This document shows, one piece after another, positions 4,300 to 38,574 of a stretch of 64,000 nt of DNA. The position numbers were made by a program, and so were the translations under genes. The notes below the pieces were generated by a model. That model had not been told where the DNA came from. It searched no databases and saw only the letters and a list, made by a program, of their open reading frames with translations. How positions within the stretch are numbered: position 1 is the first letter of the stretch; every line of letters starts with the position of its first letter. Source of the DNA: Takakia lepidozioides (lineage: Eukaryota; Plantae; Bryophyta). The DNA lies in the NCBI GenBank assembly GCA_030704615.1, contig CM060732.1, forward strand, positions 39,184,001 to 39,248,000, in the 5' to 3' direction.

Positions 4300-4735
4300 G
4301 CAGAGACCTGCAACTTTGGCAGATGCCATACAAGCCGGAAAAGAGTTCGACAACATGCACTGACAAGTTCAACAAGCCAAGATGTCGGAGCTTGCACTGC
4401 CATCATACATCACGATCGAGCCCATGCAGAATCCGACACCCTTAGCAGTAATCCAGCCCGCTCTTCATTACACGCCTTCTTATGCTGGAGGAGCAAGGCC
4501 ATATGTTCCAACAACGGCCCCAGCACCAGTCACGGCACCAGTTGTGCCCCAATATGCAGGTGCAGTTCCCACCAGCTCGCATGCGGATTCGAGTGGACTA
4601 TCCGATTCGCGAGTGGATCGTTTAGAAGCCCAAGTGACGTCTCTCATGAAGACGGTTTCTTTCTTTGAGAGAGGATGTGCTCCTGGGTGTACTTGGTGTG
4701 TTGGCTCTTTCGATGCCACCCACTGTCTCTCTTGA
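4300..4735 (+). mobile_element. Possible degenerate retrotransposon gag-like fragment
   Basis: Pro/Ala-rich stretch, then a short coiled segment (DSRVDRLEAQVTSLMK) and CTWC, resembling the gag region before a zinc knuckle. There is an in-frame stop upstream and no pol. Confidence 0.3.
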
Positions 4736-6398: not shown

Positions 6399-7629
6399 AT
6401 GCGATCATCATAGGGTATACAGCAGGGTCATGGTGAAGAGGCCTTCGAATTGTATGAGCAAATGCAACAGGAAGGGGTGATGCCCAACAGGGTCACATTC
6501 ATTTGTGATCTCAATGCAATTGCTAGCATAGGAGCGCTGGTAAAGGGTAAGCAGGTCCATGCTGACATTCTCAAAGTTGGAATTGTGGTATGCGTTAATT
6601 TGAAAACCACTCTTGTCGAAATGTATGACATGTATGTCAAATGTGGGAGCGTCAAGGATGCACGTCAAGTGTTTGACGAAATGCTGAAACAAAATGTGAT
6701 TTCATGGACTGCCATGATCGCAAGATATGCTCAGCATGGGTATGGTAGGGAAGCCATCAGATAAACATATACAACATGAAGGCTTCCAGCCAGACGGTAT
6801 CAATTTTATACCTCTTCTCTCCGCTTGTAGCCATGTGGGCCTATTTGATGAAGACCATCACTACTTTCATTCCATGAGTCGAGATCATGGCCTTACACGT
6901 GCAGTGGAGCATTTTGGCTGCATGGTCGACCTACTTTGCCGTTCAGGGCGATTGGATGAGGTAGAACACTTTATTATGAAAATGCCAATAGAACTTGATG
7001 CTTGTGTGTGGGTGGCTTTTCTTTGGTACCTGCAGAATTCATGGCAATGTTGAGTTAGCAGAACATGCTGCAAAATGCATTCTGAAATGCATGCTGGAGC
7101 TTACGTGCTACTGTCCAACATCTATGCTACGGCTGGCAGGTAGGATGATACAACAAAGGTTAGACAAATAATGGAGGAAATAGGTGTGAGAAAAGAGCCA
7201 GGGCGCAGTTGGATTGAGTTGAACACTGACAATACATGAGTTCATGTATTCATGAGTTCATGTATTCATGAGTTCGTTATGCATCCAAAAATTAAGGAAA
7301 TCCATATTGCTGAGCTGAGGAGGTTGTCTGGGCAAATGATGGAGGCACGGTACATGCCTGACATGCGCCTTATGTTGCATGACATGGAGGAGGAACAAAA
7401 TGAATTATCTCTTTGTCACCACAGTGAGAAGCTCGCCATTGTATTTGGACTCATCAGCATGTCTCCTGGAATGCCTGTCTGTGTGATCAAGAACGTTCGG
7501 GTGTGTCGTGACTGCCACACTGCCAGTAAGTTCATCTCGAAGATTGTTGGGCGGACACTTGTTGTACAGGATGCGAACCACTTTCATCACTTCCAAGATA
7601 GGGTTTGCTCTTGTGGGGATTACTGGTGA
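6399..7629 (+). pseudogene. PLS-class PPR-E-DYW RNA-editing factor pseudogene, 5'-truncated
   Basis: PPR motifs (GHGEEAFELYEQMQQEGVMPNRVTF, MYVKCGSVKDARQVFDEM..NVISWTAMI, LLSACSHVGL, HFGCMVDLLCRSGRLDE), an E domain (YVLLSNIYA, KEPGRSWIE) and a DYW domain (HSEKLAI..CRDCH..CSCGDYW). Broken by several frameshifts and stops, e.g. near 6420, 6762, 7025 and 7141. Confidence 0.93.
7236..7276 (+). repeat. 16-bp tandem duplication (CATGAGTTCATGTATT, about 2.5 copies) inside the PPR pseudogene
   Basis: Directly visible; it lies at the E+/DYW junction. Confidence 0.85.
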
Positions 7630-30868: not shown

Positions 30869-33258
30869 AAGTTCGCAAATTTTTTCAAGGAGAAATACAG
30901 TGCAAATTGTGCGCGTGTGTACTGATGATGGAAACAATTACAACAAGAACAACCCAACACTAAGTTCTTATTGCAGAACTTGATAAACTTCTCTTAACAT
31001 GTAAAAGCTGCAATACTCCGGGAAATTTTGTCAACACATTCCATTCATCAGAAGCAGCAACTAGTAGGAAAAAAAACATACATGACGCAGATGGATGTTG
31101 GTGGACGGTGTCCCTAGAGCCTTGTGCTTGGTGCCTCATGGCGAGGTTACAATGAAAGAGGTTATTTTCTCCTCTAACTGTAATTAAGGGGCCTGATTTG
31201 TGAGCGGTCGGTCACTCCCGGATATTTCCCTTTAGGAAAAAAACGAAGAAAAAAGATGTTGGCAAGTAGTGGCCTTGGCACTGGGACAAACTTTGTATCA
31301 CCTATCCATACATTCAAGGAAGATGTGCATCAAACGCAATGATGCCAGAAACACATCAGAAAGTGCCCCAACTATATGCCTGTGTGTGACTGGCAAGCAT
31401 TCCTTGGATTCATTGGTACTGATTCCCACGTAATCTGCAAGATCTTTGTCACTCTAAGTTTGAGCAAGTACAGACCCACTTGCTACATTCTTTTGTATAA
31501 TGCTCAAGGCACGTTTAAGTTAGCACAGGTGCTCGCAAGCTGCACATTGGGTTCCTCAAGTCCATCCAGCCGAGATCGAGATTGGAATTCATAATAAAAC
31601 CGAGTCCGTAATCAATCCGTACTACTTTACGCACGCATACAGTTATAAGGAATTCATCAATATTTGGGAATTGAAAGATGGCAGTCCGTGGTGATTATGA
31701 CCCTGAGATATTCGTGCTGATCATTTGGGTGCCAATCAGGTTTAGGATCTGTGAGAACATTTTCTTCAAGTGTAATTTGCACTTTGCACCCCCAAGTCAG
31801 ATCGGACCTGTTCTCATGGCCTGATAACATTTGCGAGATTGGCTTTAGCTGAGTGCAGCCACAGAGTCGTAAGCGTTGAATGATGGTCAATCGTGATCAT
31901 GCCCCCAAGTCATAAGGTGCTACCGGGCTGGTAGAGATTGGGCTCGAACTGCCCTTTTGTGTTAATTAAGAAGTTCAAAGTAGCATTCTTGCTCGGTGCA
32001 GCAGCTGACATCACCCACCACTCACACTTTTGCCAGAACCGTGCAGTTCCACTAACTTAGGAGCCTCGAGGAGTACTGGAGTAAAGGGCAGGGAGACTTC
32101 GAGAGCTTTCTGTCGAAAGATTCAGCTGTCTGGCTGTTACCCGGAGTTTCAAGTAGCGTTGGTTTGCAAGCAGGGGGCTTGTTATTGGAGAGCAGGCTCA
32201 CAGAAAGTCACCGCTTCTGGCCATGCTGGCCGGATTTCTTTGTTGGGCGGAGTGGAGACGCAAAAACATTGGTGGGTGTGTTTACTTCTGGCTGCTCAAC
32301 GATGCACTTGTTCGACTCTGAATATCATCAGAATTGGTATCGTGGGGCATGCTCAAGTCTCTCATGCAGGCGTCCAGCTGTGGAATTCGAATGACTACAA
32401 TCTTAAAGGAAGCATAGTTTCTTTCCAGTTGCAGCACATTGCCTGGAAGAAACTGCAGCAAGTCAGTGGTATCCCTGATGCGCCGACCAAATTTGATGAA
32501 AGGCTTTGAGTTTGGAGCTAACTGAGCTTACACCCTTCTTTCAGGTTCCTCTTGGTTTAGGATCTTTTTCACATGTGTTGATACAAATCGTCCCTTTTTA
32601 TCAAGTGTGGTGTCGTTGACTCAGTATATGGCCCTGAGTGAAACCGAGAGTGTGGTGATCATCTTTTCATCTCATTGTTCAAAGGCCTGGATATTATGAA
32701 TCCCTATTGTAGCCTCCTAGTTAGAACGTGCTCCCTCCAGATCAATTATGCTGCTTTCATCATGCCTGCCCTCCTCGACTTTGTACCGGCCATCACTTTG
32801 TGGATATTGGTAGGGATTTTTCCCTGCCCCACGCATGAGTTCTCGTGAGAACGGCTTCTCACCAGCATGTGTGGATTTTGCAACTGAGCTCGTATTGTTT
32901 CCAACCAGGCTTTTGGTTTGTGCAACCTTTGGCCAAAGCTGCCGCCTTTCCTTTCAGCCACAGCAAGTCGGTAACTGGACATACATTCTATCGGGGGTGC
33001 CGCATCATTGGCGTAGTTCTCTGTCAAAGCATCATGGTGGAAGTTAGTGCTTTGACACTTCCGACACCGAGTTGCAGGCATATAACAGTAGTGGGGCATA
33101 GACAGACTATTATAGTTCAGGTGAAACCGATGGGCTTCCAACCTAAATAAGATAATGTGGAGGGTGAGCATCTTCATGGACTTCATGTGCAGTGATGTTT
33201 AATCTGATCGTCGACGCAAAGATCCGCTTCTGGTTCTTGTGACTGTGTGCTATCGGCT

Positions 33259-36200
33259 ATGAAGGGAGATAGAGACCAAGCCGTTGCCCGGGATTTCATG
33301 GGACTTAGGACTAGCAGCAGTGTTACTACAAGAGCAGAAAGAGAGAGGGAGAGCGAGATGGGGAATCAAGGACCTGAGAGGATCTCATCGTTGACTCGGT
33401 TGCGGCAAGCAGGGGAGCAGAGCAACCTTGGTTTGTCTTCGACCTTCTCTAACAATACCATGAGTAGACTAAATAGTCTTCTTGGAAACGGTGGTCTTAG
33501 CTTTAATCCTAGGAGTGGTGTTGGATCAAGAGGGGATATTGGCACCTCTGCTGGCCCTGGAAGTGCGTCTGGCAATTCGACCATCTGTGGGAATGACACA
33601 GTCAATCTTAGCAGGGGAGGTTGCTTCATTGGATTCAACGGGGCTACTGTTCAAAGGTCCCAGGCACAGTATAGGAGAAGATCATTTGAGGCTGAGGAGA
33701 ATAAATCCAAGGAAGAGGGTTTGAGAAGACCATCTTCAAGCGAGAGAGAAAGGGGTATTGGTACCAGTAAGCCGCTGCAAGAGCTGACTGCTGCTGACAT
33801 TCAGAAGCTCTCAAGTGAAGAATGCCGGAGATTAATTCTAGACATTGGTGAGTTTGTCCTAGACTGGGAAGAATATATATACTTATATATATATATATAT
33901 ATATATATACATCCAGTGAAAAGATGTATGAGGTACAAGGTAATTTGACCACAGAACCCCCATGTCAATCTGGGGTGAACTTGTTCATAGATAATACTGA
34001 GAATTGGAGTGTTGCTTTGATGAAAGTATGGCTGGAGCCCAAGTTTGTTATACTTGTGATGCATTTGCAGTATGTGCATGTTGGACGTTTGCAGGAAGAT
34101 TAGTGTTTGCTGTGGCATGTCCAGCTCCACCTGGAAAGTGGGTTGATTGGTGTTGGCTTTTGATCCTCCTTCTGCAGGAATGCAGTGGCCCTCATGGAAC
34201 AAGTCCTTAGCACGTCAAGAGCAGGTACTGTGTAGACCCAAGTGACTCATGAAGAGAGAGAGACCCAATCCAAACCCCATAGGCCGTGTTTGGCTCACCG
34301 ATAGCTATGCACTATGTGGAGCACTGTGCAAACCTGGGTTTCCATACACAAGAGAAGCCCCCTATAATCCTCAGTTCACTCTTTTTATGTATTGGGCTGG
34401 TACTTTGCTGACTGTGGATTTGTTAGTTCACATTGCAATCAGAGATCTTTTGTTTTCCTACCATTGCTTTGACAAAAAGTCCTAGTAACTGGCTTCTGGA
34501 CAGATTACGGTCTTATAAGTTGCATGCTGGTGGACAATCCGCTTTCTTGCATGCTTGGTCGCCAACCATTACAGATCTTACCTCAACACGAAGATTTGGT
34601 TGCGGAGGGCGGAGTGCAGACAATTCTTTTTCACCTTTCTATGTTAAGAAGAATCACTGCAGCTTGTCCACACATGCACCAAGGTTATTTTGACTTGAAG
34701 TGATAGTCCTTGGTCTCTGATTGGTGGGTCTGTTTTCTGTTCATTGCAGCAAGGGTTTTCCTTTGAGCACGAATCAGCCAAAGAAGCCTTGGACCGAGGA
34801 AGCTTTGCAGTAAACAAGGAAGGGGGTCCCCGGTGTAGCGTTCAATCCCCACCACTGTTGCCCACTCAAGCAAGTCATATTGGGAACAACCCGTCTTTGA
34901 GCCTTGCCAGCCGTGCCTTAGAAGAGCTGGCACGCACGCCTAAACGCTTTGGCTCTGCTGCAGGTCTGCCTGGACAATGTTATGTCTTGTTGGTGCTAGG
35001 AATCATTTTGAGGCCATGTGAGTTTCTAGTGTTCTGTCTCTCTCTGTCACACAGACACATTCATCATATAGACTCCAAAGGCCCTTTGTGGGTGTCTGCT
35101 AGAAATGGGAACTAAAAATGTCTCAGGAGTAGGTACATTTATATGCTTGACTTGCTGCAATGCACGCAAAAGAAGTTTCTTCGAACAATCTGTTGGAGAG
35201 TTTAGTGGGTTCTGAAATCTTCATGAAAATAACTGCATTACACTCGCCAGGTATGTCTCTCTCATTTAATACATCCCTGTTGGAGAATGCACTAGGTCTT
35301 AATCTGGTCTCGCGAGCACAATCAAACTCCACAGTTGTAGGTGCCCCAATGCCTGCCACCATGCCCGAGGGGATTGCTGCCGGTGCTGTATCAAAGCAGT
35401 CGTCGCTTGATGCCAGTGCACCTCCTATCCCACAAAGGTGAGCAGTCTTATGTGGTTTTATTCATTGGATTGGTTTTCTGCTATTGCTGCTCACTAATCA
35501 AATGTCATCTGGTATGCGACCCGACATGTCTACATCGGCTTCAGCATTGCGGGAGCCCTCGTGGGTGCAGGGCTCTAGTAAGTGTCAATCAATCCTGCTG
35601 AGTATGGGAAAGACCTCAATCACCTTGTTCTAACAATTAAACATTTTTTAGCAGGTTTTTTTCAACAAAATTTGCGGGGAGGCCTGCAACAGCGCAGCTT
35701 ACCATCTTCTATGCCGGCACAGTGAATGTTTATGACGACGTTCCAGCAGATAAGGTTAGACAGCAGACTTATCAGACAAACTTCTATTGAGTGGCTAGCA
35801 CTAGATCTCTAGAGATCTAGTAGAAGATATATCACTCAGAATTGTACTTGTGTGCAAATACCTTTAACGATTGCTTACAGCAAATATGTGTTGGCATAAT
35901 CTCTTTGGAATAGAATGTACCGGAGCAGGTCGTGTGAAGCCCACTATGTATACATGAGAGCCTAAAACTGCCATAGTGCACATTTTACGACAATGCAGTG
36001 AGAGGAACTGAGTCTAGATTTGTGGACTGAAGTGTCATCATGTCAGAAAGCATAATGTTGGTTTTCCCACATTTCTCTAGCCCCTCTATCTTGCAACAGA
36101 TGTGGCGCATGGCTGTGGTGGCTTCAGTACGAATCACACTATTGAGAATAAAGGTTGTCAGACCTCATGCTTGGGAAAGTACTCCAGGCTGTTGTTGTTA

Positions 36201-37469
36201 GGGGATACAAAACGTCCCCACTGCTGCATCATTTGCATGATACAGGACATTGCCCTTGATACGGGCAGGTTTCCTGATTGACATTGATTCTTGCTTGTAT
36301 TCACAGGCACAAGCCATTATGCTCCTGGCTGGAAGTAGGACACCATGGTCCTCAAGCCTTGGTACACAAGGCCCTGCACCAAGTGGACCTATGCCAGCCG
36401 CTGCAAACCTCAAGGATTCATCCAGGTCTCTGCCCCAACCCATATCTGTCCCTGGACCTTCCCAACAACAGCAGGAGCGGCTGCAATCAGTACAAGTTGA
36501 TGTGCAGCTATCTTGCCCAGCCTCGGCTCCGGTGTCCTCAACCCCTGGCCAGGGCTCTGGTCTGTCTGCCAGACGGGTAACTGTTCAGCAAGTGGAGCAG
36601 CAGCCTAAAAGCTCGAAACCCGACAGTCTCCCTGCTTGTGAAAGTGCACCAATCAGAATTAAATCGTCTTGTACCAGAGGTGCATAGTTTTTCTGTCTTT
36701 TTGATGTGCTCATGCTAGTTTCAAATCACTGCTAAGCAATAAGCATTGGCATGTGTTGATGGAACTCGTGGCCACAGACAATCTTGACATGGACTCGTGT
36801 ATCATTTCTGGTTTTGACAGTGTTGCCAATGGCCAGGAAGACGTCGTTGGTCCGCTTTCTTGAGAAGCGAAGAGAGAGGTATCCCCTTCACCAGCCCTAT
36901 GTTCTCTTCATGGGTGGTCAGCATGGTAAATCAAGGAGATAGAGTAGTTCATTATTTACAAGGTTCATGAACTGCAACTATCTTACTGGCATGTGCTGTG
37001 GATGCACAATTTGGACATGCCTACTCTGGGTGGGTCTGTTTAAGTTTATTCCAGAGGCTCAAGCAGGAATAGGAGATTTGATGGAAATTATTCTTTGGCA
37101 GCCTGTTACACAGTACATCACCCAGGTGCCTGACACTCATCTTTTGAGTCTTTTTCCAGGGCTCGCACGAATGGGCCTTACATTTTGACCTCAAAGAGAT
37201 CCCCTGAACTCTCATCCCCTCCCCCTGGAAAATCAACGAGTCCCACAAGGTCTTCTGATGCTCAACCTGAAATAGGCAGCCTACCCCCACAGAAGTTGAG
37301 CAGACCAAGCACTCCTACAGAAACTGCCGAACTTGCAGAAATGGAGGACACAGATGTGGCCTTGGAAAGGGCTAGTGAAGAACAGGACGCACAGAGGAAT
37401 GGGACAGCTGCTGCAAAACAATCATCACCAGTTGATACTGAAATGGCCATTCCCCTGGTAGGGAGTTGA
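33259..37469 (+). CDS. TIFY-family transcriptional repressor with PPD-like domain, TIFY/ZIM and full Jas motif; 8 exons (33259-33847, 34178-34224, 34750-34963, 35341-35437, 35655-35754, 36307-36679, 36821-36878, 37160-37469)
   Basis: RDFMGL near the N-terminus; KPLQELTAADIQKLSSEECRRLILDI|GMQWPSWNKS; AQLTIFYAGTVNVYDDVPADK|AQAIMLLAG; VLPMARKTSLVRFLEKRRER|ARTNGPY. All junctions are GT-AG and in phase. Confidence 0.93.
33873..33909. repeat. (TA)n microsatellite in intron 1 of the TIFY gene
   Basis: Directly visible. Confidence 0.95.
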
Positions 37470-38574
37470 TATTGCAATCTGCAGTAAGCATAATTGTTCT
37501 GTTGACAAAGAATTATGTTGTAAAATGTCTACGTTAAAACCTCCTATGATAATTGTAGGACAGAAATCAAAACAAGTAAAGGTTATAGCGGTGGTTAACA
37601 TAAGGACCTGCCATTTGTTTCACCCTTTAGGCTACAAGGGGTGTGTTTTACCCAGTCTGGGTCCCCATGATGTGAGGGCCCTCACCTGTAAAGTCATTGA
37701 GGTTATCTTGACGGCTCAACTTGAATGTAGCCTCTTCCCTCTGTCAAACAGACAGAGAGACAAAGCATGGTACAGTGGTTATTTGTCCAAGTACATTTTA
37801 CCACAGTACAAGAATCATTAACAGAAAAGTAAATTACTCAATCACTTGCCGGCCACATTTGCATTTGGAATGCTTTCTCTGTTGGTTCTGCATGGAAGGC
37901 TTGGAGAGGGCACGGTGCTTTCCTGACAGTTCCCTCACATCCATTGCTATTCAGATGTACCCTGTAGCTAGGTCTAGGTGCACATTGTCAACATGTTCCC
38001 ATCTCAGACTTTCTAAGTCATAGGTTTGCAAGTACTGGATATTGCCAAAGGTACTCCATGAAAAGTTGTCTGACGAGAGCATGAACTTACGTTGATAACA
38101 GCTTTGGATCTTGCTGTTGTTGTTCGAAGTTAGTTTTAATCTTCTCTCCTCCCCAACATTCTGTCCCTTCTGACATTCAACCTGCCTTGTTTGTCATTCT
38201 TGCCAATATTTCTACATATGAAGGCCTCGCCTTGGTTTGCCATGAGCTTTTCCACCTTGTGAGATCATGACCCTTGCCTCGTATACAAAGAACGGAGAAG
38301 ACGAGAGGAGGGAGGGAAACAAATATCGCTACTCTTAGAGCTATTCTCAACCACACATATCCATCAAACTCAGCGATGGCAACTAGTTCTAGAAGGCCGT
38401 CCTGCTGTGATGTCTAGGGTTTTTTGTTATAAGCAAAAGCGATCATAGCCTCTATCGACATTCCTTGGCAATTCTGGTCCGTGCAAAGAGCGATCACAAA
38501 AGAAGTGGCGACAAAATGCCTTCATCGAAGCTAATTACAGTGCACCATCGTCTGTCGAGTAGTAGATTCGAAGA

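Follow-up and report, generated by a model that had tools for sequence, protein, structure and literature searches.

Can one protein hold both the domain that marks the PEAPOD regulators and the complete degron of the JAZ repressors? PEAPOD proteins determine how large leaves, seeds and fruits become, and JAZ proteins are jasmonate defence switches; they count as distinct subfamilies, one recognised by a PPD domain with a crippled Jas motif and the other by a full Jas motif without a PPD domain. The question is raised by a locus of the moss Takakia lepidozioides, at positions 33259-37469 of a 64,000-nucleotide window (the whole stretch of DNA analysed; contig CM060732.1, 39,184,001-39,248,000), where the original prediction placed a single TIFY protein joining a PEAPOD-like domain to a complete JAZ-type Jas motif. 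We find that this is an expressed gene in which both features are intact, which has the PPD-specific intron and which has relatives in other seed-free plants. All features described below lie on the forward strand.

The gene consists of eight exons and encodes 610 codons plus a stop, in a spliced coding sequence of 1833 nt that is divisible by three and holds no internal stop codon; all seven introns have GT..AG borders. RNA-derived contigs from two runs of separate studies, X1 and X2, establish this model. In X2, one spliced contig of 3462 nt spans the seven junctions and joins the eight exons, and X1 has the same seven joints (33847|34178, 34224|34750, 34963|35296, 35437|35655, 35754|36307, 36679|36821 and 36878|37160). 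The X2 contig is placed at 33100-33846, 34177-34220, 34746-34961, 35294-35435, 35653-35752, 36305-36677, 36819-36876 and 37158-37600, and the exon bounds given here are the contig placements after the cut offsets stated by the aligner. An upstream AG at 35250 (35250/35251) was ruled out as the acceptor of exon 4, which both runs fix at 35296. The ATG at 33259 is preceded by an in-frame stop (33205-33207). Since the transcript contig overruns 33100-37600 at both ends, by more than 1 kb on the 5' side and about 250 nt on the 3' side, the untranslated regions are long. The long 5' leader contains short upstream ATGs, at 33122-33189.

The PPD domain is shared between the first two exons. Exon 1 (33259-33847; residues 1-196 and the first base of Gly197) ends in KPLQELTAADIQKLSSEECRRLILDI-G and carries the first half of the domain (KPLQEL...LILDI-G, residues 171-197) at 33769-33847, while exon 2 (34178-34224) supplies the second half, G-MQWPSWNKSLARQEQ (residues 197-212). 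Pfam holds no model of this domain. A seed-plant reference set was assembled with a degenerate DNA pattern for acceptor-G-M-x-x-PSWNKS at the start of exon 2, which matched 40 metagenome contigs. All 40 are, once translated, seed-plant PPD genes, and no further bryophyte gene was found among them. The set includes an Arabidopsis-type PPD2-PPD1 tandem (L004, L036) and poplar-like genes; a cDNA-like contig, L030, gives a whole PPD-ZIM-Jas* reading frame, Jas* being the degenerate Jas motif of PEAPODs. From distinct seed-plant half-domains, eight for exon 1 and six for exon 2, we built two profile hidden Markov models (HMMs) and ran them against the 3629 six-frame peptides of the window. The exon-1 model matched the first half at 21.0 bits (E 4.7e-5) and the exon-2 model the second half at 18.7 bits (E 2.3e-4), in each case as the sole significant match. 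Moreover, the window contains exactly one PSWNK word, one Jas motif, one RDFxGL word and one TIFY word in a tify-domain context, three other matches to a loose TIFY pattern being due to chance. Because the models match only exons 1 and 2 and the motif words are unique in the window, a chance origin of the combination is excluded. Direct comparisons agree: the first half matches the seed-plant cDNA contig by BLASTP (E 3e-6), and by hand count 22 of 42 residues are identical to AtPPD1 (AtPPD1/2 sequences as printed in the supplement of PMC8891376), ungapped over the stretch that begins at KPL and closes with exon 2, and with PSWNKS invariant. The segment has no match among PDB sequences.

The introns tell the same story. 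The PPD-domain intron (33848-34177), whose donor G|GTGAGT is used in both X1 and X2, falls in phase 1 within the codon of Gly197 (ATT G|GTGAGT ... CAG|GA ATG). The same Gly codon is split in the same phase in every genomic seed-plant locus, including the Arabidopsis-type PPD1/PPD2 and the poplar-like genes (AAA G|GT ... AG|GN ATG). The intron of the TIFY domain lies in phase 0 after its final Lys, as in seed-plant PPD genes, and that of the Jas motif in phase 2 in an Arg codon, at the matching position in the seed-plant PPD genes and in the relative L001 described below. The PPD domain is therefore genuine, by its sequence and by the shared phase-1 Gly intron.

The remainder of the protein is of the JAZ kind. 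Exon 5 (35655-35754) encodes the first part of the ZIM/tify domain (...AQLTIFYAGTVNVYDDVPADK), including TIFYAG, and matches Pfam tify (PF06200) with an E-value of 1.3e-13; exon 6 (36307-36679) completes the domain (AQAIMLLAGS) before running into a linker rich in Pro, Ser and Gln. By hand count, and with the motif strings of the Marchantia polymorpha JAZ (MpJAZ) and the P. patens JAZ taken from Table S1 of PMC6829463, the 28-residue TIFY block is identical to MpJAZ at 27 positions and to AtPPD1 at 17. Exon 7 (36821-36878) supplies the degron loop and the amphipathic helix of the Jas motif, V-LPMARKTSLVRFLEKRRE-R (residues 489-508), and its open reading frame matches Pfam Jas_motif (PF09425; E 2.5e-9). 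Exon 8 (37160-37469) opens with R-ARTNGPY, giving the X5PY end (ARTNG-PY, residues 509-515), and continues with a 95-residue Ser/Pro-rich tail and the stop. Spliced together, the motif reads LPMARKTSLVRFLEKRRER-ARTNG-PY (SL-VR-F-LE-KR-RE-R-ARTNG-PY) and fits exactly the consensus SLX2FX2KRX2RX5PY as quoted in PMC7077819. It is identical at 19 of 26 positions to the P. patens JAZ (...RRRDRARTRPY), at 17 to MpJAZ and at 10 to AtPPD2 (hand count). Against solved COI1/MYC3 complexes, the motif can be aligned with the degron peptide of JAZ1 bound to COI1 (3ogl; LPIARRASLHRFLEKRKDR), with full-length JAZ1 and with the JAZ10 (5t0q) and JAZ9 (4rs9/4ywc) peptides; its LPMARK loop pairs with LPIARR of both JAZ1 and JAZ10 and with VPQARK of JAZ9. 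The Jas intron (36879-37159; joint 36878|37160), in phase 2 in the last Arg codon, splits the motif 20 + 7, an arrangement that does not discriminate between the subfamilies because PPD genes share it.

One X1 contig (36850-37187) retains the Jas intron, with a depth of 20 against 63 for the spliced joint; the contigs do not separate pre-mRNA from a stable isoform. Readthrough (open reading frame 36784-36942) gives RER-YPLHQ-PY with a stop 17 codons past PY, so that retention would keep an in-register X5PY and lose the 95-residue tail.

Close to its start the protein carries a third JAZ feature, the motif RDFMGL (residues 11-16; 33289-33306), separated from the PPD domain by a Ser/Gly/Arg-rich linker of about 150 residues. 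To judge from sequence, then, the protein resembles JAZs in its ZIM domain, Jas motif and N-terminus, and PPDs in its PPD domain and the intron within it. The main claims of the original prediction bear scrutiny well. All the motifs that it quoted are present and in frame in the translation of 32800-38000; the PPD domain, said to begin about 170 residues inside the protein, starts at residue 171; and the spliced transcript shows it joined to a complete JAZ-type Jas motif (loop, helix and X5PY) and to an N-terminus of the JAZ3/4 type, RDF[LM]GL. Splicing of exons 1 and 2 to the TIFY exons and a score against a PPD alignment, on both of which the prediction had staked its case, are provided by the X2 contig, with X1 in agreement, and by the two HMM matches together with the shared PPD intron. 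Likewise, the comparison of intron phases that it had called for shows the PPD, TIFY and Jas introns coinciding with those of seed-plant PPD genes.

Homologue searches were done exon by exon. A HMMER search of 1.84 billion representatives with exon 1 returned one spurious repeat protein and a 145-residue open reading frame (P0001) on a contig of the ENA, which led us to the locus L001. Neither a word-indexed search nor the ESM Atlas gave any match to exon 1, from libraries that seem poor in plant proteins, and no exact record of the exon-1 product was found; a two-row alignment matched 137 stretches of metagenomes, none of which was confirmed. L001 has the same order of elements as the Takakia gene: VARDFMGL, a PPD domain (KPLEELADADIQQLTREE.../MRWPSWNKS), SRALEELARTP, TIFY, AHFIMLLAGS and a Jas motif, LPQARKSSLARFLDMRQK-R. 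It comes from an assembly of 2x coverage with frameshifts in exon 1 (4560-4600) and in the TIFY exon (6430-6470), which makes single residues uncertain; these frameshifts may be sequencing errors rather than signs of a pseudogene.

The two remaining exons encode linkers. Exon 3 (34750-34963) is 48% identical to L001 and contains SRALEELARTP. This stretch between PPD and ZIM, SRALEELARTP(K/E)R, is near-identical in exon 3 and in L001 (5620-5802), where the flanking linker has diverged, and no counterpart was seen in the seed-plant PPD cDNA L030. Exon 4 (35296-35437) encodes a low-complexity linker.

A structural model of the PPD domain was obtained with AlphaFold2 for the target L030 116-340, exon halves taken from other loci being entered as alignment rows of their own; the target segment corresponds to 33769-33847 plus 34178-34224 of the window. 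The model consists of a helix (33-42), the conserved loop (43-51, KGMRRPSWN) and a second helix (52-67), with a predicted local distance difference test score of about 80-88 in the core. Foldseek gave no significant match to it. An exhaustive structure aligner returned many SAP domains (SLX4, E1B-AP5, PIAS1, Hcc-1, MKL1, Ku70, Tho1, SIZ1, FAN1 and MANF/CDNF) with Z-scores of 3.2-4.8, covering the whole small domain at 2-3 Å. The model thus suggests that the PPD domain may be a SAP-like helix-loop-helix; we found no paper that calls it so.

Is such an architecture new? Putative PPD orthologues have been reported in Sphagnum fallax, S. magellanicum and Marchantia polymorpha, and none was found in Physcomitrella or Anthoceros angustus (PLoS One 2022; PMC8836299). 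In these candidates the PPD domain is set about 100 residues deeper into the protein, and the domains are more widely spaced. The Sphagnum candidates are, like the Takakia protein, long moss TIFY proteins that have an internal PPD domain as well as a TIFY domain and a Jas-type C-terminal motif. Their PPD domains are reported as 54-59% identical to Arabidopsis, against 52% over 42 residues in Takakia, and relative to Arabidopsis they start about 100 residues later, against a start at residue 171 in Takakia; the gene identifiers of the Sphagnum copies carry differing numeric prefixes (04G, 15G). An internal PPD domain in a long bryophyte TIFY protein is therefore not new, and in this respect the architecture was already on record, as the original prediction had allowed it might be. 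For the motif at the C-terminus, the same study scores no more than a 15-residue Jas*; COI1, the degron and MYC do not occur in it, and it neither mentions PY nor states a full Jas motif for the Sphagnum candidates. In the literature searched we found no report of a full Jas motif in a PPD-bearing protein, nor any description of a bona fide PPD domain occurring together with a complete Jas motif, degron and PY included, and with the shared PPD intron. With PPD candidates on record from bryophytes since 2022, the find is incremental and unsurprising.

The Marchantia candidate of that study, OAE22702.1, deserves particular attention. It is reported to match AtPPD1 with 64% identity and 82% positives in TIFY and with 73% and 80% in Jas* (PMC8836299). 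Comparing the MpJAZ strings with AtPPD1 by hand, we obtained 18/28 and 23/28 for TIFY and 11/15 and 12/15 for Jas*, which are exactly the same percentages. Because all four percentages match and Marchantia has a single JAZ, OAE22702.1 is probably MpJAZ, an identity that PMC8836299 does not state. If so, the N-terminus of MpJAZ would be worth testing for KIX binding.

How did the two sets of features come to stand in one gene? The architecture is best explained by retention and not by fusion. The original prediction had proposed either a JAZ/PPD hybrid or an ancestral intermediate. A fusion hybrid is unsupported because all three domain introns sit as in seed-plant PPD genes, and the ancestral type fits; the recurrence of the PPD-ZIM-Jas layout in an independent relative, L001, also fits a retained ancestral architecture. 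With moderate confidence, we read the gene as a 610-residue class-II TIFY repressor of an undivided PPD-ZIM-Jas type, from which PEAPOD and JAZ proteins may be derived by reciprocal loss. The known distribution would be best explained by an ancestral gene that is nearly intact in Takakia and half-decayed elsewhere, with the PPD end eroded in Marchantia and the Jas end in L001, and that in vascular plants was resolved into PPD genes, which lost the degron loop and PY, and JAZ genes, which lost the PPD domain.

From Arabidopsis and Marchantia, we infer interactions of the Takakia protein with NINJA/TPL, MYC, COI1 and KIX. As a nuclear repressor, it would recruit NINJA/TOPLESS and dimerise through its ZIM domain, while the Jas helix would hold MYC-type basic helix-loop-helix factors. 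The LPMARK loop and the helix would allow capture by SCF-COI1 with a bryophyte ligand of the dinor-oxo-phytodienoic acid (dn-OPDA) type, leading to degradation after wounding or stress. The PY end would support nuclear import, and the PPD domain would serve as the docking site of a KIX8/9-type adaptor or of some other partner. Should both ends be functional, oxylipins would directly control a PEAPOD-type repressor module through a single protein. The gene offers a concrete molecule with which to ask if growth control and defence signalling formerly made up a single switch, and in what way the circuitry of their trade-off came apart.

Several observations weigh against an undivided ancestral gene of this kind. 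Its ancestral status is argued from architecture, introns and distribution, not from phylogeny. The full Jas motif is not kept across the lineage, L001 lacking PY (...KGPDG) and having a degraded helix (FLDMRQK). Residue 3 of the Takakia degron is Met, where the tested JAZs have Ile or Gln; a Met at this position is also present in a Pinus JAZ entry (Table S1 of PMC6829463). The identity of MpJAZ with OAE22702.1 is drawn from four matching percentages only, and the matches behind a SAP-like fold are weak by Z-score.

Other explanations have to be set against this reading. The gene might be an ordinary moss JAZ co-receptor in which the PPD-like segment, an ancient module of the N-terminus that is retained for other reasons or is decaying, does not bind KIX. 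Its ZIM and Jas are indeed of the bryophyte JAZ type, given the near-complete TIFY identity to MpJAZ and a Jas motif closest to that of P. patens JAZ; it shares the RDFMGL N-terminus with AtJAZ3/4 and VvJAZ1; and the PPD candidate reported from Marchantia is probably MpJAZ, a functional JAZ. Furthermore, no bryophyte orthologue of KIX8/9 or of the F-box protein SAP appeared in the literature searched, including PMC8836299, in searches that were not aimed at such genes. Yet conservation of the domain is good, both in L001 and in comparison with seed plants, where PSWNKS is invariant, and its exact intron is kept; this speaks for selection still acting on the same surface by which KIX is bound in Arabidopsis. 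We consider this explanation rather unlikely. JAZ surveys admit no added PPD or GATA domain; the Takakia protein has a PPD domain, and PPD-bearing sequences were excluded from the JAZ set of PMC6829463.

Conversely, the gene might be a PEAPOD orthologue and nothing else, whose Jas motif serves the binding of MYC or other transcription factors and nuclear import without being a COI1 degron. Its turnover would then pass through a SAP-type F-box protein as in Arabidopsis; PPD binding to KIX8/KIX9 and turnover by SAP are described in Arabidopsis, pea and tomato. The true PPD domain with its intron speaks for this, as does L001, whose degraded Jas motif suggests that the lineage tolerates decay at this end, and in L030, a seed-plant PPD cDNA that is not classed as a JAZ, the helix has stayed fairly JAZ-like. 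However, the LPxAR[KR] loop, the mark of degradable JAZs, is intact in Takakia and absent in every seed-plant PPD fetched, and all 26 Jas residues fit the consensus, so we regard a pure PEAPOD as still less probable, indeed doubtful. Finally, that two neighbouring genes or a pseudogene have been read as one is highly improbable: it is refuted by the single spliced contig over all exons, by the same junctions in a second run from another study and by the intact reading frame, and we found no evidence that supports it. An undivided PPD-ZIM-Jas repressor thus remains the reading that we prefer, and it is with this gene that the known TIFY proteins are compared below.

Arabidopsis PPD1/PPD2 (TIFY4A/4B) and other seed-plant PEAPODs have the PPD-ZIM-Jas order and the three domain introns of the Takakia gene. 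They differ from it in having the PPD domain at the extreme N-terminus, a position that it does not occupy in Takakia, and AtPPD1/2 are without the RDFxGL motif that is present in Takakia as RDFMGL. The main difference lies at the other end. In the seed-plant PPDs fetched, the Jas motif reads GQA[NS]RK[VM]SLQRY[RL]EKRKDR, without the LPxAR loop, and of the 26 positions in the Pfam Jas model only 1-18 or 1-20 are matched. Where the C-terminus is readable, in the published AtPPD1/2 and in the L030 cDNA, it runs GQANRKVSLQRY.EKRKDR into a Lys-rich tail without PY. The original prediction was thus right to call the PEAPOD motif degenerate, and the Takakia gene, with LPMARK...X5PY, does not share this condition.

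On the JAZ side, AtJAZ3/JAZ4 and VvJAZ1 resemble the Takakia protein in their (M)ERDF[LM]GL N-terminus, in their length and in a ZIM domain of the QLTIFYAG.V.VYDD type, and the [LV]PxARK Jas motif, seen in the JAZ9 peptide, is common to the JAZ3/4/9 group and Takakia. These proteins have no recognised PPD domain, whereas the Takakia protein has one. By eye, in the sequences of the PMC8891376 supplement, AtJAZ3, AtJAZ4 and VvJAZ1 show after RDF[LM]GL the pattern K.P[LI]..V.KEE, followed about 24 residues on by G[MI].W.FSNK, and this resembles the KPL...GMQWPSWNKS of the PPD domain with its 26-residue spacing. The K.P[LI]...G[MI].W.FSNK pattern of JAZ3/4-type N-termini may be a vestigial PPD domain. 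Tentatively, one could go further and suppose that the first class-II TIFY protein of land plants was of the PPD-ZIM-Jas type and that COI1 directly ruled a KIX/TOPLESS growth repressor in early bryophytes. JAZ and PPD genes would then have arisen by reciprocal loss, with the JAZ3/4 pattern as a vestige of the PPD domain and MpJAZ as a half-decayed form; we put this forward as a possibility that is less probable than its opposite.

MpJAZ (Mapoly0097s0021), the sole JAZ of Marchantia polymorpha and stated in the literature to be a target of COI1/dn-OPDA, has a Jas motif of the same LPxARK...X5PY type as the Takakia gene. It is 459 residues long and, if OAE22702.1 is indeed MpJAZ, would have a PPD-like stretch 38% identical to the Arabidopsis PPD domain, compared with which the PPD domain of Takakia is far better kept.

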